A DNA stretch of 64,000 bases from Kudoa neothunni (taxonomy: Eukaryota; Animalia; Cnidaria), in assembly GCA_964304625.1 (NCBI GenBank), contig OZ199839.1:4978837-5042836 (forward strand). The letters run 5' to 3'. Shown one piece after another: positions 1,562 through 44,753 of the stretch. Position numbers and translations under genes: made by a program. The notes beneath the pieces were generated by a model, which was given only the letters and a program-made list of their open reading frames with translations, searched no databases and had not been told where the DNA came from. Within the stretch, counting starts at the first letter, position 1. The number at the start of each line of letters is the position of its first letter.

Positions 1562-2710
1562 TTAGTGATCGTTTTTGTTAGTTATTTGATTATAAATTTT
1601 GTTGAAAAGTTGTGACATATTTAGCGCCAGTTTAGACACCAATTCCAAATGGACAGCGGTTATACGTGAGTTATATTTGGTTTCGAATTTGTCTGGATGC
1701 CAAAAAATGCGTTGATCTTTAACAAATTTTTTGATGGATTCAGTAGATGTGGTTGAATTATGAGTGAAGAAGCTACCATACAGTGCTACCTCCCCCATTG
1801 ATTTACATAGTTCAGCGAGTTTATTATCATCCATTTCTAGAGTGATGGGGATAACATTTGATGATCTGCCAATATCATCTTGCGTCTTGCTACGCACCTC
1901 AATCGGCCATGGGAAATCATCAATCAACAGTAAATTTTCGTCACAATTATTCGTAAACGATTCGAATCGTTTGACCCACTGTTGATGCAATAACGCTAAA
2001 TCAAGTTTATTCGTAGTAATAGCAGGTTCCACTGATTTTCTATCCTCTTTGATGTTGTCATTGACGTTGTCTTTGGTTGCTGGTCTTTTTCTTCGGGTAC
2101 TTCTAGATGGTTGTTGAGGGAATGAGTATTTCGCTTTGAATTCTTTCGAAATTCGATCACACCATTGATCAAAAGTTTCATATTTTAAATTTTCTCCAGA
2201 ACCACCATCCTCGAAAGAGTTGAAATAAGAATTGTCATCATCATCACCAATTTCCTTATAGAATTCATAGTTGGGTCGGCCTGGATCGCTCTCACAGGGC
2301 CTATTATTTTCATTGTATTTCTGGGACGACTTTGATATATTCAACACTTGTTCAAGTCTATGCTTTATTTTTTCACCAATATAATTCATATGTTCCAATG
2401 TTTTATTTGTCATTAATCCATAACTAATAAGTTTTTGCATGATGAATATTTTGTCAAGATTTCTCTCCACATATTTTAACATATAATAAACAGGGAGATT
2501 TCCTTCGTTGTCCAAACAATCAAATTCAAATTTGTTGTGATACTTCAGAAGTTTGATGTTTCCATTTACACAAATAATGTGTGCTATATTTTTTCCTGTT
2601 TTGTTTTTAAATCCAGCCACTTGTTTCATAGTTATACCGAGCTTTTTCACCTCTCTTTCCAATTCTCGATATGAGCAATTATTTGATGCCATTCTGAATA
2701 TCTCTTCCAT
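1562..2710 (-). CDS. NFKBIL1: NF-kappa-B inhibitor-like protein 1 (ankyrin repeats, C-terminal WHPDKF domain)
   Basis: Ankyrin repeats GKNIAHIICVNGN and DNEGNLPVYY; family motifs ETFDQWCDRI, FPWP and QRIFWHPDKF; 382 aa in one coding exon. Confidence 0.85.
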   Translation of the reverse strand: MEEIFRMASNNCSYRELEREVKKLGITMKQVAGFKNKTGKNIAHIICVNGNIKLLKYHNKFEFDCLDNEGNLPVYYMLKYVERNLDKIFIMQKLISYGLMTNKTLEHMNYIGEKIKHRLEQVLNISKSSQKYNENNRPCESDPGRPNYEFYKEIGDDDDNSYFNSFEDGGSGENLKYETFDQWCDRISKEFKAKYSFPQQPSRSTRRKRPATKDNVNDNIKEDRKSVEPAITTNKLDLALLHQQWVKRFESFTNNCDENLLLIDDFPWPIEVRSKTQDDIGRSSNVIPITLEMDDNKLAELCKSMGEVALYGSFFTHNSTTSTESIKKFVKDQRIFWHPDKFETKYNSRITAVHLELVSKLALNMSQLFNKIYNQITNKNDH

Positions 2711-18600: not shown

Positions 18601-21600
18601 TATTCCAGTTTATAACTTTTATGAGAAACAACTACGTCTGTTTACCGCTATGACATTCAATCGACAATATTTGGCGATTGACAAATTGAACAAGAGTCTA
18701 AATGCTGAACTTGTGCTCAAGTATATTCCTATAGCGATATACTTGATTTTATATTATCGTGAAACTTTAGATGTTTATCGGATATTCTCCTTCCTTTCAC
18801 ATTACGTAGTGTCTTTTGCAATCTTATGTTAACGTTGCATATTGATCGAGACCCTCACGAACCAATCCTTGCTTTACGTTACTCAAGGTTGTGGTCACAG
18901 ATCGACGAGTTCAGCGAGAATAATTCATAGTGATCAACGATAAATTTTTCAAAGCATTTAATTACTGTCTAGTAATTCTAATTGTGGAGTCAACATAAAA
19001 CAACGAGTGATTTTCAGCCAGCTTATCGATTATACCATCAACCACTTGGAATCGGTGGTTAGAATACCCGTATCCAATCAAACAAATGTAGAAAATCAAT
19101 TCACATATGAAGTAAATATATTATTCTCTTGAAAGTAATATAGTTTTATTGCAAAGGTAATCAATCTGGTTTTGCATTTGGTGAAATTTGGATTCTTCAA
19201 TTACAAAGAACTCCTCAAAATCACTAGAATGTTGCTTAACATTCTTGACTCTGATACGTGTGAATCAAACGTATGATTTTTCCTTCATAAATAAGACTAA
19301 CTTAGGTTTTATAAATCTAGGAGATTATTATTCTCAAGTTGAAAAAGAAAATATTAGACATCGTAGATTTTGTAATGTCTGTCTATATGGACTCCGAAGT
19401 GACAACATTGTTATCTATCTACAAATTAGAGTATAAGAAATCGGTGGCGTATAATCGCGGTATTTACGTGACAAAAAAACTATAAAAAATATTAAAATAA
19501 CCTTAAGAAATGAAAAAAAGCAATATATACAACACTATTGGAAAGGCGATATTAGAAAATCAAAGGTATTACTCAGTTAGGAACTTAGTTGTAATACAAA
19601 ACTGTTTACTTGCAACTGCACTGGATAATAGACTAAATATACTTTATTTTATATCTTTGTAGCTTGGTAAATTAAATTAATCGATACAAAATATATTAAT
19701 AATTGTTCGATTTTATCTATATTTCTTAAACAGTCAGAAATGACAAACAATTATACGGTTTTTTATAGTTTGGGAAAAAGTAACTTGGATTCAGTTGGAG
19801 GTAAAATGATAGTGAGAGTGCTGATCAAACTCATAATGCAAAATCATGAGCCTCTTGTGTTTCGAGCGCTTCAGCTGTTGTTCAGACATTTTTCACAATG
19901 GAAGGAACTTTCAATGATTGTCAGTCAGGTTCAGTTGCTGGTTTCGGACGATGACATTAAAAACTACTCAAAAATACAACAAGATTTGGACTATCTTCAT
20001 TTGTTGATAGAGAAAAGTGAGTTGTGGATTCCATGCTCCACAATGAAAAAAGGAAATCTCACACGAAGTACCAATATTGGGGTGAAATCGTTGGCCGAAG
20101 GACAGGGTCAACTAAAGTGTTCTCGATCCAACTCTATAGATATTCAACAAAATGTAGTTATTATTTTCTATAAAAATCCTAATTTAATTTTTTCAGTTCT
20201 CCAGCCTATCAGCCGAAAGAGTAAGAAATTGTTCGGTTTGTACTGTCGTCTTATTGATGATTTTCTAAGGAAATGGTACGAAACTTTTTGTCCGGCCATA
20301 GCAAGTCAAAACCATCCGATGAAAATATGGATCTCTTTTGCAACACTATTTCGGAAGTATTACATTTGTTGTTGAATTTTTCAGATAATTGTTTAGATCT
20401 TGAACAACTTTATAATGATGTGCAGTACTGATCTTACTGCTAATGATAGAAAACATGGTCAGTCCTTGTTAAGAAACATGGGTGTTCATGGAACAGTCCT
20501 TAGTTTGCTTGAAATTCCCTTTAAGAACGTCAGTGTAATGAGTTTTCTCATTAATTAGCACAAAGCATATATTTTTTATTTAGAATGATTCCATACTATA
20601 CAATATAGTTGGAAAAGCTCATAACCTTTTACAATTGTTTTGTTATAAAAATACTAACAATCAAAATCTCTTATTCCCTAAACTGTCCGCCTTCACAGAA
20701 AAATACAATGTATTTGTTTATATGTTTGTCGGGGTCTATCGACGAGTTATAAACTCTCTTGTTAGGACGTTGAAGTTCAAACAGCTAACGCAATTTTACA
20801 AGACAACTGTGAAATCTGTCATAAGGTGGACAGTTCTGTAGTGGAGAACATTTGTCGAGGTTTACAGAAAGGCTCTATCCCTTGTGTGCAACTACTCAAA
20901 CAGTTTGTCTATAATAATGGGAGAATATTTAGACGAATGCAAGATATTGTGGTTTCTAACGTAGAACTAAATAATTTATCCATGTCGTTAAAAAATATTT
21001 AAATTATTTCTTTTAATAGGTTCTAAGTAAGGGTAGAGAAATATTGTTCCCGCCCGAATTTGATGGCTTCGCTGGTGCTTCTCTTGTTGAGTGTCTTTCC
21101 GATAAGGACCACAACTTGTCAACCTATGTGGTCGATTTCCATTTGGAAGTTATTTCATTACTGACCTACTGCACCTACGGAAAGAATGTGTATGCCGAAA
21201 TTCGTTGTCAAAGCATAATATCATTTAACGACGCCCTCGACATTATCACTGAGAAAGGAATCAATAGAAAGGTGATCAAAATTTACACATATTCAACTAT
21301 CTAATAAACATATAAGATTTGTAATGCATACCTCAACCTTCTGTTCCATGCCTTTATCGATGCCGAGATTGAACTAAAAGAAATTCATGGCGGAAGCCAT
21401 ATATGGGTGGTTTTTGATCTCTTCGTTAGAGATATCAACAATATCGCTCAACAAGATAAAAAAATACAAAATTCGCCCCCAATTTTAGACTACACATTAA
21501 GTATCATACCACAATATATCGAATATTATTTCACTCTCAACAATCAAAATGTACCCCAAACAGCGAAAGTATCTTGGCTTGTTGTGATTGATGATTTCGA

Positions 21601-27859: not shown

Positions 27860-30637
27860 ATATTAACATCGTATTTATTAATTTAGCTCTTTATATAGTT
27901 TCTTACTTTGTTAGATATTTTCTTTACTGTTAATTTATATGATTGGTGTGGATGCTAATTTAAATTTATTTTTATGTCGTCTCAAATTGAAAACGTCATA
28001 TAAATTTGCAAATTGTTTTTATAATCATTTAAAAATTTGTTAGAATGATCTATAAAATATGTAATAGGTATTTATATACACTTAATGTTTTACTAGAAAT
28101 TCCTGTTTTTAAAAAAATTATCATATAATTATAAGAAAAGGTATCTATCAGCTTTTGCGACCTTAAATAATGTATTGATTAATATTTTGAGTATGAATCC
28201 AAAACATTGAAGAAAATTTCAATGATCCCAGATAAAGATCAATACTTAAAATAGATCATTTTATAAAGTATGTCCTTTCAATATTTTTATTATTTTAATT
28301 TTTACAAAATTTGATATTTTCAAATAAATAATACTTTCGCTTTCCCTTTATATCAAATTTTTCTTATTATATTGGATGAAAATGACTTGTCGTGTTTGCT
28401 TTCAAAAAAAGAATTAAAATTATCGTTGTTGGGATTAATTAAAGATCTCAAGGAAATATTCAACTGAATTAAAACTTTAAATAAAATTTAAATAACATAC
28501 TTAGTGAATTAACTTTTAAAGTTATATTTCAACCATTGCTTCAATTATCTGAAACATGATCGAATAAAATATCTTTAAAATAATATTTCTATTATTTACA
28601 ACATAAAATGACATCCAATGAATAATATATTAATCAATTAATTAATAAATTCCCATCAACTTATTTTTTAGCACGTAAAAATTTAATCGACTAATAGATC
28701 ATCAAAGAGGACGCTATATTTAACAGTTCAATCTGCTTTTTATTTCCATTTACATGAATTCCCTTTTATCCCGCATTAAAATATACAAATATAATATTTA
28801 ATCGATACAGTTTAATCAAATATTTCAAATTCTCCACACTACTTAGAAGGAGTCGAAACTCTTCTTGAAGGAGAATTAAGATTTTATATTGGCTAAAATA
28901 TTTACGTTTCTTATACATTTAACTTTTTAACACAAAATAGTTGACATTTCGCGTTAAAATTCGTTAATTTATAGTTTCTGCAGTGATATTAGTAAGTTTA
29001 TACTTTAGCTAAATACAGGAACTCAAAATATACTATTTTCATACAAATAATCGTAAACTAAGTTTTTAATTAATATATATTCGTATATTTATTTAATTTT
29101 GATCATAAAATAGGGAATTATGTGAAAATTATTTTTTATAATATAATGTGAGAATCCTAGTTGAAGGACTACGTCTCAGATTAATTGGGGTTATTGGTTG
29201 TAATTGGCATCAAATTAATGACAAAATATTTTTAATATTTCTAAATAAAACCTAATACATTTATATTCAACTATGAAGAACATGTATTGCTTACAAAATA
29301 AAATGTTTAAATGTTCAACACAATGATTATTTCTGAAAAATAATTATCATTTTCACGTATAAATCTAATAATTGGAAAATATTCCTAAAATTTTTCACTC
29401 AATTTTACAAGAATTGCTAAAGTTAGAATGTTATATTTAAGATTAATGACAAATTAATTCAATTATTTTCCTGGTATTAAATAAATTTCATAATATTTTT
29501 GTAGGAAATGACCCAATTTTAAATTTCAGTCTAACCTATATTGATCAAATATTTTTTTACTCTAATGGTTCACTGTATATTAATCTAAATTTTACTGCCG
29601 TTATAGCTCAAATGCACTTTCTCAGTCCTATTTTAGTCCCCCGAACTTCACACGTAGATCAACTTAGGCAATCTTGGGTATTATTTAATTAATATTTATT
29701 TTCCTAGAAAGTTATGATATTAGTAATTAATTCATCTAAGAATTTTATCATAATAACTATATTATTATGCTTTTTCGCTAAAAATATAAAGTCCTATTTT
29801 TAAACGAAATGCATATATTAAGATATTTCATTCCATTTAAATATTGTTTGAAAATTTATGGAGTTTATAAACTTAAAGGTATATCATATTTTCATACAAT
29901 ATATTCATTTTTAACTATTTTAATACTTTAAATTTTCATGACGAGAATTTTTAATATAAATAGCACAATGGATTCAATTTATTAGTATTATTTAAAAATA
30001 AGACTACTATGAAATTCATTTTAATTATAAAATTAATTCACGAAATAATTAGTTAAATTTGTTCCATAATGAATTTAACACAGTAAAATAATTATGTCAA
30101 TAACCTGTAAATTATTACCGAATTTCGTACATTTACCAATTATAGTTCACTTTGTTCCCCAAAAGAAATCACAATTTATTTTCCTTATATTAAAATGTGT
30201 TTTAATGAGCACTGATTTTGGTATTTACAGCATTTCTAAGTAAACTTTGACTCCCAAATGCCGTGATGCGCATGAGCCATAAAAATTACTTTGATAATAT
30301 TTTTAAAATATGCTGGAAATCCATTAATAATTGTTCCTAAAAAATAATCGAGAATAACAATTTCAACCGTAAGCTTTACGATTTATATCGTAACACGGAG
30401 AATTATAAAAAATGCAAATTATTCTGTAAGAGAATGCCAAATCAGCTATCTAAATTTAAAAGTTGAATCTGCAGAAAACTAACTTAGTTTTGCCTCTAAA
30501 AAATTCATTTAATTATTAAGCAAATGAATCATAAAATTCACGCATAGAGAACAACAAGAAATTTAAATGTATTAAAGTGAACAAAAAACAAGGTGGTCGA
30601 TTTAAGCGATTATATAATCATCAAATCAGATCTATTA

Positions 30638-33600
30638 TTATTGAGTGTATGTACATATTTTGGATATTTTTACAATCCCATGCAGACTGGCCTTGACTGC
30701 GCTGAGAAAATGATCCTAAATTGAAAGTTTTAATTTAAAATTAAACGTCAACAATTCAAAGGATAAATACAGGAGGGAAGCGCTCTTCATTGAAATCGGT
30801 AGGAATTCGATTCGGGTTGGCATAGGAAGTGGGCGTTATTTTATCAACAACTTGGCCGCTTAGAACCATAGAATTATAATCCAAATTGTTATTGTTTTCA
30901 ACAAAATAATCTTCGAAGGTGGTCTAAAATGATTGAAAGCTTAGTTCAGTTATCAATAAAGAGAAGGTTGACCAACATTGGAAACCATAGTAAGAGCAGT
31001 GACGGGTCTTTTTTGATCCGACCGATACACACAATTAAGACAGCGACGATATTGGATATCAATCATCGGTTCCATACAAATGACCATATTGGCTCCCCTC
31101 AAATTGATATCGGGCATATGTTGGCTCACTTTCACTAGACAAAGTGAAGCTTGGGGGAGTTGGTCATTGTTGAAATTGTTTAAAAAAAGTTGTTGTTTGC
31201 AAGTTAATTTTTGTGGCTTGATTCGCAGATAGTTGACACCATTTTTCCAACGACTGACTCCCACAGACGAAGAGGCAACTCTGCTAGTTCGAAGTGAAAT
31301 TTGAAACAAGCTAGCAAGGGCCGCTTCAAAATAATCAAAAAATGATATCTCTTCACTGAACACGACAATTTTTAATGTATTATTAGAGCAAACACTCAGA
31401 AGTCGAAGCAGCAACTCAACTTTCATACTATAAGCCTTGTTGCGTATGTTGGTGAAAAAGTTAGCATAGGTGTCACTAGAGAAAAAAATTATAATTTGCA
31501 CCCAATGAAATCAAGCCCAAACTTGAGTTCTTTAAAAAGTGATTTTTTGTGAGGATCATAATGATCTTTGTTGCACTCATTGTTGCGGCAGGTGGTGAAA
31601 AAATTGTTAGAATCGGTTAAATCTCCTGGGGGAGGTTTATTTTCGGGTTTGGGCGCTGGTTTCAACCCAAGAGTGGATGGATGTAGAAGGGTGCATCGCA
31701 GCAAACTCACATAGTCCGAAAATTTGAGCTGATTATCCACCATATATTTCAGAATGTGGTTGTAGATGTTAACCTGAAGAAGGCTGGAATGAACCAACAC
31801 TCGAAATTCATTTAGCAATGGAAGTTGTGGCATTATAGCTGGTATTTTTAATTGCTAACAGAAACAAATATATAGAAAAATGGAGCCAAAAATCAACACA
31901 CAAATACATAGACTGATTTGCGTAGTTCAAGGTTGATTTCATGAAAAAGGCGAATTTTCTCTCGGTCTACTTCCTCGAGAGCTGTTCCTTTGATCTGTGT
32001 CAACGTTTTCACTTTTTTGACTAGATTATGAACTTTGTCAAATCTCAGCGATAAAAGCAATTCTGAATCTAACACAAACACAGACGACACTGAGAAAAAT
32101 CCACAAGAAAAAATTTACTATAAAAACAGTTCCAAAAGTTACGCGTATCAAACACTTTACTCTTGAGGAAGCTATTCATGAGTTTCTCGTCGTAAAGTTG
32201 ACTATTGGAAAGAAATAATTTTTTCTTAGTGTGTATTTGATGGACATAAATTTCGAAAAATGGGCACAGATCTGTCAGAAGATCGTAATTATCGAAAATA
32301 GTGAGCGCAGGACCTAGAATGATGGATTACTCGTAATTGAAAAACATCAAACTTTACCATCAACACTCTCAAACAGAGACTTCGGTTGACTAATATGTCG
32401 AATGTATTGGGCGTAATCGATCACTGCTATCTGCCACATCTCACCCCAACCACAATAATTCGGCTCCAGATTCAGCGTTTGATAATACCGACCACAAAAT
32501 ACCGATTTCTAAGTTATATTCTCATTAGAAATAAAATTTCAACTAGTAGAGAAAAAACACTAACAACTACAACATTAATTATGCTAACTAATCTGGTAAC
32601 AAACCTACTACCAATTATGCTAGCAACATACAGGAGTAAACATGCTTGCTGGCATCAGAAATTGAAGGTCACTCGTCCAATTTTCGGCAGAATTTCGATC
32701 GATAACAATCAAAACTTTAGTGTTTTTGGAGTATTTCGACTTGAGAAACGCTTTTAGAAATGCTACAATCTATTAGCGACAATAATGTTTCTTCAGTATC
32801 AAGAAATAAAAAACTACCGTTCGCCGCCTCTCGAGACAATCCTCATGCACCAAACAGCACGATTCTCCACAACCAGACTGAATATCTTTATGCCATTCTT
32901 CAAGACAACCCACAACACGTTCAAATAGAAATTTGATCGATTCCAGCTGATATGGTTTTAGATGGAGTCTGTCTCGAAGATCAAGTTGAAAATCATCATG
33001 TAAATCCAATCTGTTGACCTATATAATATCAGATTTAATCTTTTCATATTATCAACAATTGCGACGAACATCTTTATTTTTTCGTTCCAAGGGTGTCACC
33101 GGTGAAAACGATAACACATCATATCTGAACATTTCATCGTAATCCAATCTCTGGTTTACATTCACATCAGTTACAACAATAAAAACAAATTGATAGATTA
33201 CACTTGAATCAAGCATTACCACTCCAGATTGTATATTGTGAGGTCCAAAATTGAAATTATCTAAATTTGGGTCGATCTTCTCATCAGGAAAACCTTCAAA
33301 TTGTCGGGTTAGAATCAAGTCTGCATTTTTCAGCATGTGATTCATTGTGCGAGGTTTACAACGAAAACACATCCAATCGTGGAGACGTTGCTTAACCATT
33401 CGTTTTCCATTCATTGTTAGAATCACATTCACACAGTTGAAGCAAAATCGCAATATACAACGACTACATTCGATATATCCAACAAGTTGTTCGGCTGTTT
33501 TTGTGCAGTAGAATTCCATTTTACAAATTGCACAACTGTTCTGCACAACCGAACGAGCCATCACAAGATCTTTCTCACCTTCTCTACATTTGGTTGAGTA

Positions 33601-33864
33601 GCATCTTGAACACACCACAAAAGTGAAAATTGGATGACTCAACCAAATAGTTTTTTTCATACGACGGCACAAACAACACACTGCGGTTATTGTCGGCTTT
33701 AATTTTCCAATGTATTTTTCTGTTAAACTACAAATGGTTGAATTTTGTTGTTGAGCGGCATCTTCATTGATAGAAATTTGTTGCTGTGATGGTGTCGATT
33801 TTTCGAGATTTTTTGGTGATTCGTTGATGATACCATTTTGTCGAGGTGGACGAAAATCCATCAT
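30638..33864 (-). CDS. ATRX: ATRX-like protein: ADD domain plus degenerate SNF2 helicase domain
   Basis: ADD finger CCLC...HPIFTFVVCSRC...CAIC...CSRCILRFCFNC...WMCFRCKP; LKPYQLESIKFLFE (Q motif); KVELLLRLL...KIVVFS; INLRGANMVI; VYRSDQKRPV; spliced frame runs to TAA at 30638-30640. Confidence 0.85.
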
Positions 33865-34882
33865 ACCTAATTCAACACTTTTCGAACGATAAATGTCTTT
33901 AGTTAGGGTTGTATACGCGGAAAAAAAAACAGACGTTGCGCGTGCGTCCGACCCATATCGGGGCTCGAGGGGATTCTAAACCTGAAAATAAATGTTCGAA
34001 TGTGAGAATAAATGTCTAAATGATGAATTTTGAATTAAGTGGGATTTATCGCCTATTTTGTCAGCTTGTTGAACTTATTTGGATTGTTTTAGATGTGATT
34101 TAATTCATTTACCTCTCTAGAGTTAGCTGAATTGAATTCGCGCACTAATTTATCAATTTACTGTTAGTTGGTTGTTATTTGCAATAAATAATTTAAATAA
34201 GCTCTAAGTATTTAATGATAATTTAGATATAGTATGTTTATATATATTTAATCAAAAATGTTGTTTAAACTTACTTTTATTTAATCTTTTATTTGAATAA
34301 TGTACATATTAGGGATATAGGACTGAAATGTATTCATTAATACATTTCAACGATAGATAATCTTTCAAATACATATCTTTAAATTTCGGATAATTTTTGA
34401 AGCTTTCGAGACATATTTTGAACATGAGATTATACTTAGCTATTAGTTATTGGCGGGAGTGAAAATTTTAAAATTGATGCACTACAAATTTCTGTATGAA
34501 ATAATCCTGCTCTAATCAAAATGCTTTGGTGTTTAGAGCTGTTAAACTTAGTTCTTTCTATTGTTATTCTTACGTTATTGGATCACCTTGGGAGTTGGCG
34601 ATATGGCGTGTGGGAAATTTTCCGTGTATTTACTTAAAATTCTCTGGTTCATCAAGGTGAGTTTTGATTATATCAATATAGGTATTGTATTTGTATGAGT
34701 TTAATTCAATTTTCATTACATTTCCATGGATATCTTTGAGTGATGAGTTTATGTGTTGTGAACATTAGCCATGTCAATGGTGTTGATTGTGTTTGCAAAT
34801 ATTCTATAGAGATCTAATTTGACACTAGGATAAAAACAAAAATTGTTTCATTCGACAACATTCTTCTTACAACATTTTATTG

Positions 34883-36932
<2,050 letters not shown>

Positions 36933-40742: not shown

Positions 40743-43700
40743 ATGAAAGATCTATTCTCTTACTTCAAAGTTAATACCGAAAATTCTACTCAACCATTGC
40801 CTGTTAAGAGACACAAGGAAAATGATTTCGATAAAAATGAGTCCAAAACATGCCCATTCAAAATGTCAATGGATGTGTGTGAATCAGATTTTAATTTGAA
40901 TTCTGGGGATATTTGTGTGATGTCCTTGGAGAAAAACCAATTGTTTTTTCCAGTGATAGTAAACGATTCCAGACCCAGACGAGGGGGATCCAATGAAAAT
41001 ATTAAACCCTCTAAAAAGTCACTAATTTTTTCGAATTAAATATAAACTATAATATAATAATAGATTTTCAGTCAGTAGATATGGTTCAAGTGATGTGTTA
41101 TGGATAGATCGAAGCAACCAACGAGATTTGAAAGTGATCGCGTCAAAGAGTGAATTGTTAGAATACATGAAGAGTAATAAAGATGCTAAAATCACTTCGG
41201 AATTTGAAAATTTCTTACATTTGATGGATTTTACGCCAAGTGAAAGATTGGATGTGATTTACTCGTTGTTGGACAGTCAACATGAATTCTCTGAGGATGA
41301 AGTTACTCCTCAAATTAAAGTCAGTAAAAGAGTCTCATTTTTAGATGATTCAGATAATGAAGATAATCGCGCAAACAAAAGTTTGGTAGAATCAGAAACT
41401 TCTGTGTTGCAAATGTCAAAATACAGTTTTCATCTCGATGATAATCAGGATAATGAAGACAATGAAGGTGCTGGTGAACAGTCATTGCTCGATCTAGAAG
41501 AGATACTGAATAAAATAAAGTCCGAAAACAAATCATCTCGAAAAAATACAATGAGCTTAGTCGAAAATGACTATCAACATCATCATTTGGAATTTTTAAA
41601 GGATAAATTCCGGAAAGATATACATGGTGTCCCGCATTATCATTCCGATTCCGATAAGACAACCTTGTACGTGCCAAATAGCTTTATTAACTCCAAAGAA
41701 GTGACGCCTGTGTTGAAACAGTGGTGGAGGATGAAAAGCGAGAATTTTGACACTGTTTTGTTGTTCAAAATGGGAAAATTCTATGAAACCTACCATATGG
41801 ACGCCGATACAGCTGTAAAAGAATTGGGTCTCATTTATATGAGAGGCAGTGTGGCACATGCCGGTTTCCCCGAACACAGCTTCCCCCAATATGCTAGTAC
41901 ACTCGTTCAAAAAGGATACAAAGTTGCTCGGGTTGAACAAACGGAGACCCCTCAAATGATGAATGAACGCATCAAATTGAAAACCTCATCCAAAACTAGC
42001 AATGATAAAGTTGTGAATAGAGAAATTTGTTCTATTATAAGCCCTGGAACCCGAATATTTGATCCTTTTGATGTGGAAGTTGAAGCCAACAATGCTTGTA
42101 TTAATGTCACCAACACAAATGACAACCATTGTGTTGTAGGTTTTGGTATGCTTGCCGTGGTTGTTGATGGTTCCAGTGTGGTTCATTCGGCTAAACAAAA
42201 TGAGTAATTAATTGTGAGGTTTCATGAATTTATTTTGATTGACTGTAAGATTGGGAGTTTGCATTTTGGATTGTTCAACCGGGCAATTTTTCTTCGGACA
42301 ATTCTCCGATGACAGCACCCTTAGTCAACTTCGAACCATGCTTTCTTCAATGCCCTTGCCTGTTGCAGAAATAATTATCCCCAAAAAAGTGGTTTCCTCC
42401 AATCTGCATTCTTTCATTAGTCGATCACTCTCACATGCAAGAAAGTAGTTTGTTGTTGTTTTTTCGTAGTGTTTTTGAATATAATTTGTCAAAAAGGGAA
42501 TATACAAACGATAAAATCGATTCAACACGAGCTATTCTACAAATGACTCCCTACTTCATTTCTTCCAATGGGGAAAACAACAATGATCCCTCATGTCAAT
42601 TGTTTAGTGCGCTGGATATCTCTTCCAGTGATTGCTCCAACTATTCACTTGCTTTCGTAGCTATGGGATATTGTATCAATTATCTGAAAAAAAATAAAAT
42701 TGATCGCAGAATTTTTTCGATGAAAAACTTCACCAAGTATGTTCCCAAATCGAATCAACTATCGTCATTAACAAATAACAACCTTCTCGATCAACGTTAT
42801 ATGGTATTGGACCATAATGCTATCACCAATTTGGATATTTTGTGCAATGAAGATGAAATTTTCAACAAAAGTGGAAGTTTGATTGGACTGTTGGACCATT
42901 GTTGTACACCTTTTGGACATCGACTTCTAGCCGGTCTCATAAGTCAACCACTTTTCCGAAAGTTCTTAGTTATATTTTTGTCTTAAATTTTATTTATTCG
43001 TAGAAAAGATATAGAGGAAAGATTAGGCGCTGTTGAAACTATTATGCGTTGGGATGAAAGAGAAGAGATCAGAAAACAATTACATACCTTACCCGATTTA
43101 CACAGACTCTTTTTCAGAATCCACGCCAATGGTGATCTTCTCACAAACGAGGATCATCCTGATAATCGGGCAGTTATTTTTAACGCTATTATGTTCAATA
43201 AGAAAAAAGTCAATGATCTGTTGAACGCTCTTGCCGGTTTCAACAAGCTTTGTGACATTGCTCAACAACTACTCCCGTTAGCTAAACACTCTTCGTTGAT
43301 TGAAAAACTCCTAGATGCTAATAATAAAACCAAATGTTATTTCAACACCAAACAGACCGTTGATTTCTTCCAGAATGCTTTTAACGTCACTGAAGCTAAA
43401 GAAAATGGCGTCATTATTCCTAAAGCTGGAGTACTTGTCGAATATGATCAAACAGTTGAGGATATTAACGAACTCCTACAGTGGTTTGATCTGCGACTTG
43501 AGGAACTCAAAAAAAGCACCTCTATTTCTACTCTTAAATATTGGAGTAGTGGTAAAATACGCTATTACGTTGAAGTCCCCCAAACTAACAAAAAACTACC
43601 ATCCTCATTTATTTACAAGTCGCAACGAAAAGGCTTCTGTCGGTATGCACTGGAAGAGTTGGAGGAACAGGTAGCTGTTCTCACTTCATTGGAAGATAAG

Positions 43701-44753
43701 CGGGATAAATTACTCTCCAAATCATTGGGTCTACTATTGAAACAACTCTCCTCAAACAAAAATCACTTGCAGATGGTCATTCATAATATGTCTATGATTG
43801 ATTGTTTGTTCGCATTCGCTATCTTTTCCAATGGTATCTACCATGGTACAATGTGTCGACCTGTTATTATTGGCAGCGATCCTCAAAATTCTTCCCCTTT
43901 TATCCACATCGAACAGGGTTATCATCCTTATTTAGCCTCACTTACCTCAGAATTTGTTTGTAATGATTTTATGCTCGGCAACAATGAAATATCTCATGGA
44001 AATTATACGGGTAAACGCACTATGATCATCACTGGACCTAACATGGGAGGAAAATCAACACTGATGCGTCAAGTCGCCATTATTGTCATTCTCGCTCAAT
44101 TGGGTTGTTATGTGCCTGCCGTCAGCTGTAAACTCACGCCTGTTGATCGAATCTTTGCAAGACTTGGTGCTTCGTTCGATAAACCTTGCAACGGTCAAAG
44201 CACCTTCTATGTGGAACTCCTAGAAACTTCAACTCTGCTCAATCATGCCACAAAAAACTCACTAGTCATTCTGGACGAACTCGGTCGAGGAACTGCTACT
44301 TACGATGGAATGGCCATCGCTGGTGCTGTCCTTGAATTTATTTCCACCAAAATTCAATGTCTCTTACTGTTCTCCACTCATTACCATAGTTTGGTCAGAG
44401 ATTTGACCAACTCGACATTTGGCGCCCACTTCCAGTATTACCAGATGTCATTTGTTATTGATGAACTGAGCAATGTGTCAAACTCCAGCTCTAGAAATAT
44501 TACGATTGTTTTTTTGTATCGATTGATACAAGGAGTCTGCTCCAACAGTTATGGATTCCATGTTGCACGTCTCACCGGTCTCCCTTCTAATATCATCGAG
44601 TCTGGTATCAGTCAAGCGAATTCTTTGGAAAGAAAGTTCTTGACCAAACGTTTACTAGAAACTATCGATTCGTCATCAAATAACAACTCATTTGTTGATG
44701 AGAACCATATTCAAACAATCACCGATCTCTTTAAACGTTTAGTTTCTGTTTAA
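40743..44753 (+). CDS. MSH6: DNA mismatch repair protein MSH6
   Basis: PIP-like MKDLFSYF; degenerate PWWP; TLYVP...TPVLKQWW; FKMGKFYE (Phe-X-Glu); GYKVARVEQTETP; HPDNRAVIF; GPNMGGKST; DELGRGT; FSTHYH. Confidence 0.97.

Follow-up and report, generated by a model that had tools for sequence, protein, structure and literature searches.

ATRX is a major disease gene, known from ATR-X syndrome and from tumours of the alternative lengthening of telomeres (ALT) type, and there is debate over which of its roles depend on the motor and for which histone reading and recruitment of DAXX suffice. Degenerate superfamily 2 (SF2) helicase domains are known as scaffolds in other families; the N-terminal helicase-like domain of XPF/ERCC4 is a degenerate two-lobe SF2 fold that has lost its Walker motifs and serves in binding, not as a motor. 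Here we describe an ATRX-like gene on the minus strand, at positions 30756-33864, of a 64,000-nucleotide stretch of the Kudoa neothunni genome (contig OZ199839.1, positions 4,978,837 to 5,042,836; hereafter the window), whose product has the catalytic motifs of the SNF2 ATPase replaced. XPF/ERCC4-type scaffolds belong to a different superfamily branch from this protein, and in the searchable literature we found neither a natural ATPase-dead ATRX nor an SNF2 pseudo-remodeller described. We consider it probable that the locus is a real protein-coding gene of about 877 codons and the only detectable ATRX-subfamily member of its genome, that its product is ATPase-dead and has been kept by selection, and that it would act as a scaffold.

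By sequence search, ATRX is the nearest relative of the Kudoa protein. Vertebrate ATRX (human, PDB 9l06 chain K), plant CHR20 and nematode and insect XNP share with it collinear helicase blocks, a lobe-2 insertion ending W..G.(D/N)Y.R and, if the ADD-like zinc finger that precedes its SNF2 core is a true ADD domain, the domain order. Unlike these proteins, the Kudoa protein is 877 amino acids (aa) long, has motifs I, II, III, V and VI replaced, has a linker of about 85 aa between its ADD-like region and its helicase, and is unrecognised by Pfam. An engineered helicase-dead mouse ATRX, K1584R, is a stable protein that has lost neither its binding to DAXX nor its accumulation at target sites (Bieluszewska et al., NAR 2022, PMC9458459); this one substitution causes defects in mouse cells (PMC9458459). 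The Walker A lysine-to-arginine change of K1584R is the change seen in the Kudoa gene, and by analogy the behaviour of the mutant is that which we would propose for the Kudoa protein. In contrast to K1584R, the latter lacks all the catalytic motifs, appears to be the sole copy and has been kept by selection. Drosophila has also remodelled the ancestral ATRX architecture, with the histone-reading and SNF2 modules separable; dADD1 and dXNP are separate genes (PMC4249797, PMC10671109), and the helicase/ATPase domain of the fly protein is reported to be conserved (PMC4249797). In Kudoa, by contrast with the separate fly genes, the two modules appear fused and the ATPase dead.

The gene model was made in silico. 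Exon pieces came from a three-frame translation of positions 30600-33900 and its stop-free pieces and were joined by phase-compatible GT..AG introns into nine predicted exons and eight introns; homology, family and fold searches were made exon by exon, and the joined model was used to count codons and place motifs. The spliced model is 2634 nt long, with 877 codons and a single terminal stop (878 codons scanned), and its predicted layout is an N-terminal ADD-like triple-zinc finger, a linker of some 85 residues and a two-lobe SNF2 core with an ATRX-type lobe-2 insertion. At the local base composition, open frames of 270 and 185 codons, such as those of exons 1 and 8, have chance probabilities of 7e-9 and 2.5e-6. 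An initial annotation, made from the DNA alone, had proposed an intact ATRX derivative with an uninterrupted spliced frame, inactivated ATPase motifs and a linker almost gone, and had placed it at 30638-33050. The model, the alignments and the comparison with an orthologue given below agree with each of these proposals save the range: the core exons do lie there, but the gene is on the minus strand and runs to 33864, so that the range leaves out the 795-nt exon 1 with its ADD-like finger.

All five motif strings quoted in that annotation were found in the minus-strand translation: VHEDCLERR in the piece 32776-33018, GPALTIFDNYD and SNSQ in 32072-32326, and KVSQHMPDINL and RCLNCVYRSDQ in 30956-31510. 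Motifs I, II, III, V and VI align without gaps to an intact ATRX/XNP-type protein (P0004) and to other intact ATRX-type proteins, and these alignments show that the residues of ATP binding and hydrolysis have been replaced both in the Kudoa gene and in its orthologue (P0001). Exon 2 (32818-33018, minus strand, as are all the exons; aa 266-332) carries the LKPYQ block followed by the degenerate motif I, LVHEDCLERRRT replacing ILAHCMGLGKTL and reading LVHEDCLNRRKT in the orthologue; G-L-G-K-T has become C-L-E-R-R, and CLNRR in the second species. Exon 5 (32119-32313; aa 429-493) holds motif II, where FDNYD stands in place of DEGH (D-E-G-H to D-N-Y-D; orthologue FDSFD, that is DSFD), and motif III, where T-G-T-P has become S-N-S-Q (orthologue FHTQ). 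Exon 8 (30977-31475; aa 656-822) encodes the C-lobe, in which motif IV is kept (KIVVFSEE), motif V (KVSQHMPDINL) has lost its glycine-rich turn, and motif VI reads R-C-L-N-C-V-Y-R-S-D-Q for Q-x-x-x-R-x-x-R-x-G-Q, with loss of the first arginine finger, the glycine and the leading glutamine (orthologue SSYRVEQ).

Replaced in both species, then, are the two P-loop glycines, the Walker A lysine and threonine, the DExH glutamate and histidine, the whole of motif III and the first of the arginine fingers, while the first aspartate of motif II, the second arginine and final glutamine of motif VI, and motif IV are kept. In SF2 ATPases it is established that a single lysine-to-arginine change at this position already abolishes ATRX activity. 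We also considered alternative splicing that would restore the catalytic motifs. GxGK[ST], DExH, [ST]GTP and RxxRxGQ have no occurrence in any frame of either locus, Kudoa or orthologous, so splicing cannot restore a catalytic motif and this possibility is ruled out.

The order of the helicase blocks is that of ATRX. In local alignments to P0004, exons 2, 3, 5, 7 and 8 match residues 305-350, 376-392, 468-507, 579-639 and 764-906, which cover in order the blocks of motifs Q/I, Ia, II-III and IV-VI. Exon 3 (32632-32769; aa 333-378) contains the motif Ia region (KVLIVIDRNSAENW) and is 60% identical to the orthologue; exon 4 (32358-32508; aa 379-428) spans the interval between motifs Ia and II in the N-lobe, at 49% identity. 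Exon 6 (31914-32068; aa 494-545) encodes an N-lobe helical region, exon 7 (31523-31854; aa 546-655) the LP..EF.V block and the inter-lobe region, and exon 9 (30756-30923; aa 823-877 and the stop) the TTFEDYF block that follows motif VI and a C-terminal tail, with weak, 27% identity to the orthologue. The ATRX-type lobe-2 insertion is present in exon 8 and ends W..G.NY.R.

Searches with the C-lobe point to ATRX in the same way. The sole PDB match of the 185-aa piece that holds exon 8 is human ATRX (9l06_K; E 9.6e-5), over motifs IV-VI, and a profile of the two species' C-lobes matched ATRX at 7.4e-5 against 0.15 for the next SNF2 protein, more than three orders of magnitude apart. An exhaustive HMMER search of 1.84 billion representatives with the C-lobe exon returned one close relative, the orthologue, and nine weak matches at E<1e-3; a separate homologous-protein search with the same exon gave zero matches. 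Every weak match that was looked up or read is ATRX-type: a Panagrolaimus protein of apparent XNP/ATRX type, Brassica proteins named CHROMATIN REMODELING 20-like (CHR20 is the ATRX of plants), one protein from a diplonemid, and further, unnamed proteins in which the motifs are those of ATRX. In a C-lobe tree, seven other SNF2 genes of Kudoa form a clade (99/99) that excludes both the ATRX-like gene and the ATRX references, and the gene itself, its stem some 3 substitutions per site long, falls among the sequences of ATRX type. Together, the ATRX-only PDB match, the ATRX-type database matches and the improbable lengths of the open frames exclude a chance resemblance, and the best matches and the position in the tree support descent from ATRX.

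Two of the ATRX-type matches have peculiarities of their own. The Brassica 'CHROMATIN REMODELING 20-like' protein (P0006, 770 aa) and the members of its cluster are without the whole N-lobe and so have no motifs I-III; the C-lobe of P0006 is nearly intact, with glycine for the first arginine of motif VI, and the protein may be a truncated ATRX derivative. In the protein of Panagrolaimus sp. ES5 (P0003, UniRef A0AC34F4H8) the DEAH..TGTP block and the motif V-VI block are each duplicated word for word, which looks like a duplication artefact of the gene model or the assembly.

The orthologue lies on a 6-kb contig (L001) from another sample, Kudoa-like and with a GC content of 21%. In both the window and L001 the ATRX-like gene adjoins, head to head, a PAPS synthase gene (APS kinase / PUA_2 / ATP-sulfurylase; window 34889-36929, plus strand; L001:107-2121, minus strand), which serves as the synteny anchor. 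The tblastx similarity between the window and L001 falls in collinear blocks that match the predicted exons of the ATRX-like gene, and all the orthologous exons are open, at per-exon amino acid identities of 27-60%. Over 664 aligned codons the nonsynonymous divergence (dN) is 0.46, while the synonymous divergence (dS) is at least 2.5 where saturation leaves it defined; at third positions the identity is 0.42, near the chance value of 0.31. Given dN of 0.46 against a saturated dS, the ratio of the two (omega) is well below 1, if only roughly bounded. As a separate observation, the PAPS synthase gene itself is 60-75% identical in amino acids between the species in its collinear tblastx blocks, and is better conserved than its ATRX-like neighbour.

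The replaced motifs are themselves conserved in both species, as LVHEDCL[EN]RR[RK]T, ILGPA-TIFD--D and TKKK-FL---QLY-EK in the N-lobe and as LCLV-V...GA--VIC-EPM....Y-RCL---YR--Q--PVT-LT in the C-lobe, and few stretches of the gene are as well conserved as the replaced motif I block. With its open, collinear exons in a second species and its conserved degenerate motifs, the gene is not a pseudogene. The stem of the two sequences in the tree is 3.05 long and the terminal branches 0.18 and 0.86; this long stem followed by shorter branches suggests a burst of change before the two species split, and constraint thereafter. On this comparison the motif substitutions would predate the divergence of the two Kudoa-like species and have probably been under purifying selection since.

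Exon 1 (33070-33864; aa 1-265, 795 nt, within an open reading frame of 270 aa) encodes a short N-terminus, a cysteine-rich region at about residues 61-195 and the start of the linker. The cysteines are arranged as CxxC-x18-CxxC and then CxxC-x18-CxxC-x4-CxxC-x21-CxxC-x-P; 12 paired cysteines and one more cysteine, an HP dipeptide and a tryptophan two residues before the last CxxC are invariant in both species. The spacing CxxC-x4-CxxC-x21-CxxC-x-P and the positions of HP and W are identical to those of the human ATRX ADD domain. A language-model Atlas gave as the top match of exon 1 a cluster with 68% PF17981 (ADD_ATRX), at a score of 0.88 and with 174 of 256 features shared, which we take as a lead only. 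PF17981 has zero matches across the whole genome, neither it nor a PHD profile matches the exons of the Kudoa gene or of its orthologue, and sequence and profile searches of the PDB with the ADD exon returned nothing meaningful. AlphaFold models from two-sequence alignments were unusable, with confidence (pLDDT) of 33.7 for exon 1 and 38.8 for the ADD core. Thus the ADD domain of the initial annotation has the cysteine pattern and the language-model lead in its favour and the failed profiles and fold models against it, and we regard residues ~61-195 as a probable, unproven ADD-like region. The linker that follows is about 85 residues long and has no recognisable DAXX- or HP1-binding segment; that of human ATRX exceeds 1000 aa.

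We searched the whole assembly (40.26 Mb in 4 contigs, read depth ~6.7) for other remodellers. The profile PF00176 (SNF2-rel_dom) has 22 matches in it, at 12 other SNF2 loci and not at this one, and 0 of the 12 is ATRX-type. By Pfam architecture four are CHD7-type (chromo and HTH_CHD6-9), Mi-2 (PHD and chromo), CHD1 (chromo and SANT-HL1) and SRCAP (HSA and a split ATPase), and by best PDB match four are ISWI (2e-55), INO80 (4e-68), ERCC6 (5e-40) and Mot1 (6e-60). The other four (L016-L019) are classed by their subfamily motif signatures as BRM-, TTF2/HLTF-, ERCC6L- and SMARCAL1-like. Five of the SNF2 loci were read in translation, and in all five the motifs are intact. Queries with ATRX proteins of two phyla found no better locus in the genome than these 12 non-ATRX ones; true ATRX proteins, compared between phyla, reach 46-49% in lobe 2. 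With none of the 12 loci ATRX-type and no better locus found by ATRX queries, the degenerate gene appears to be the sole ATRX-family member, within one assembly of ~7x coverage.

Myxozoans are described as having rapid protein evolution (PMC12239612). The exons of ISWI, INO80, ERCC6 and Mot1 match solved structures at E 1e-40 to 1e-68, against 1e-4 for the ATRX-like gene; since these other remodellers remain very well conserved, the divergence is specific to this gene and not merely the product of a fast myxozoan clock. Potential partners are still encoded. A DAXX histone-binding domain (PF20920, E 5.6e-12) lies at C2:3046286-3046522 (plus strand) within an uninterrupted frame of 861 aa, on the same chromosome as the ATRX-like gene, and the genome has four chromo-shadow (HP1-type) loci and a weak Pre-SET match. 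Since DAXX histone-binding and HP1-type chromo-shadow domains are retained, these data point to retention of the pathway rather than to wholesale rewiring, and the rewired heterochromatin and H3.3 biology put forward in the initial annotation is not supported as stated. The presence of these domains speaks against wholesale loss of the ATRX-DAXX-HP1 setting and says nothing about interaction. Myxosporeans are reported to be without cytosine methylation (Kyger et al. 2021).

These data allow us to propose a mechanism by which the Kudoa protein might function. It would read or scaffold chromatin independently of ATP: its zinc finger would attach to the tails of histone H3, and its dead SNF2 core would be a static binder of DNA or nucleosomes, without translocation. 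The protein may cooperate with the retained DAXX and HP1 proteins, and H3.3 deposition may have been handed to DAXX. More tentatively, we can imagine that the single ATRX gene of Kudoa, and perhaps of Myxozoa more widely, was converted into an ATP-independent chromatin protein in the burst that preceded the divergence of the two species, and that selection then fixed this new state. The conservation of what was the nucleotide pocket (HEDCL-RR-T, FD--D) would in that case come from binding to some other partner, or from holding both lobes in a single conformation on the nucleosome; we regard this extended version as possible, and doubtful as it stands.

Several observations weigh against reading the gene as a conserved, ATPase-dead ATRX. 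The SNF2-rel_dom, Helicase_C and ADD_ATRX profiles of Pfam fail on every exon: there are zero matches at E<=1 on the nine exon pieces and likewise on the ADD core, and zero at E<=10 on the exons of the orthologue. The ADD-like domain has no significant match in sequence or structure. The C-lobe tree was made without Rad54 or ARIP4 references, and its long branches are difficult to position. There is a single known orthologue; with dS saturated and local alignments that favour conserved parts, omega is bounded only roughly. The absence of a second ATRX is that of one assembly at ~7x coverage, the loss of ATPase activity is deduced from sequence, and the splice junctions are predictions, among them the one that joins exon 1 to the other exons.

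The failure of Pfam to recognise any domain, the very long stem branch and the many genes lost in myxozoans would also suit a decaying ATRX pseudogene, in which the loss of motifs was neutral and the choice of exons happened to yield an open frame. Against this, the two species are far enough apart for synonymous sites to be saturated (dN 0.46 against dS of at least 2.5), yet every exon is open in both; frames of 270 and 185 codons would arise by chance only at the probabilities given above, the replaced motifs are nearly identical between the species and 12 of 12 zinc-binding cysteine positions are invariant; we give a pseudogene almost no credence. The same unusual conservation around the former nucleotide pocket suggests that the pocket still does something, and together with the first aspartate of motif II, the second arginine and final glutamine of motif VI, and motif IV, all of them kept, it could be read as the mark of a translocase that is still active and in which non-canonical residues bind ATP, with R-R-[RK]-T as the P-loop and other acidic residues as the catalytic base. 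Such an enzyme would have to work with the P-loop glycines, Walker A lysine and threonine, DExH glutamate and histidine, motif III and first arginine finger replaced in both species. As is established for SF2 ATPases, the lysine-to-arginine change alone abolishes ATRX activity. K1584R serves as the helicase-domain mutant (PMC9458459). An active translocase is therefore, in our judgement, very improbable.

A different question is whether the helicase exons belong to ATRX, and to exon 1, at all. They could come from another Rad54-like subfamily (ARIP4/RAD54L2 or Rad54) joined to an unrelated cysteine-rich finger, or exon 1 and exons 2-9 could be two genes in the manner of Drosophila dADD1 and dXNP. 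The failure of the ADD-like region in every profile test, the lack of Rad54 and ARIP4 references in the tree, an ATG that opens exon 2 in frame in the orthologue and the exon 1-2 junction, itself a prediction, leave some room for these ideas. An ATRX chain is nevertheless the sole PDB match, though many other SNF2 subfamilies have solved structures, and all database matches looked up or read are ATRX/CHR20/XNP-type. Exons 1 and 2 are separated by 51 nt that form a phase-compatible GT..AG intron, with no room for a terminator and a promoter, and the same tight arrangement is kept in L001. The finger has the spacing CxxC-x4-CxxC-x21-CxxC-x-P, with W two residues before the last CxxC, of the human ATRX ADD. 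We consider a different subfamily or a pair of genes unlikely, and retain a single, ATPase-dead ATRX derivative as the preferred reading.

If the more tentative, extended version given above is true, the gene would be a natural separation-of-function allele, and the retained role of ATRX in this lineage would be targeting or scaffolding (with DAXX and HP1), not remodelling. A sole ATRX long kept under selection without its ATP-handling residues would amount to a separation-of-function experiment made by nature; the prediction is that ATRX is biologically useful even without its motor, and the compact protein of 877 aa lends itself to testing this. It would also add a chromatin remodeller to the list of pseudoenzymes. 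Such a protein would fit the reduction of myxozoan genomes, with their reported loss of DNA methylation (Kyger et al. 2021) and their rapid protein evolution (PMC12239612).

The composition of the gene model is in keeping with its genome. The introns of the ATRX-like gene are 44-123 nt long with a GC content of 25-34%, against 38% for the coding sequence (window GC 31%), and the exon and intron values are consistent with those published for K. neothunni: median intron 49 bp, exonic GC 36.8%, intronic GC 26% and genomic GC 30.41% (Weber, Paulini and Blaxter, G3 2025, PMC12239612). The published assembly comprises three chromosome scaffolds and a circular mitochondrial genome at a k-mer coverage of about seven (PMC12239612). 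A strongyloidid nematode as the source, suggested at first by the AT-richness, the size of the genome, the short introns and the Panagrolaimus match, was rejected: the genome has no cuticle-collagen N domain at any locus, and its statistics are those of the K. neothunni assembly. A search for SL1 also gave zero matches, which is uninformative. Contigs from a public DNA run reproduce exons 2-9 without change. The boundaries of exon 6 are the least certain of the model, with several in-frame GT/AG options; the donor of exon 5 at 32118 is a provisional choice, and in the orthologue the stretch of exons 5-6 is continuous. Three RNA runs filed under the host species label have zero reads at the locus, which is no test of expression; tuna RNA-seq holds too few Kudoa reads, according to the genome paper (PMC12239612).

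Two details of the locus stand apart from these results. All eight introns (30924-33069) end in TAG and none in CAG, and their donors are weak and varied (GTTCGT, GTAGTT, GTTTGG, GTTGGT and others). At position 33863 the A of the assembly is a G in the read contig; on the minus strand this turns the first of two adjacent ATGs into ACG and leaves the second intact; depth there is only ~5, and the difference may be an error or an allele.

Elsewhere in the window, an Rfam search of its whole length gave zero matches. Two long open reading frames, at 1562-2710 (minus strand, 382 aa) and 19740-20375 (plus strand, 211 aa), have zero Pfam matches and are possibly lineage-specific genes. At 41095-44753 (plus strand), two long open reading frames of 370 and 569 aa together carry MutS domains I, III, IV and V, with E-values down to 2e-66, and appear to form a mismatch-repair gene of MSH type, interrupted by one intron or more.

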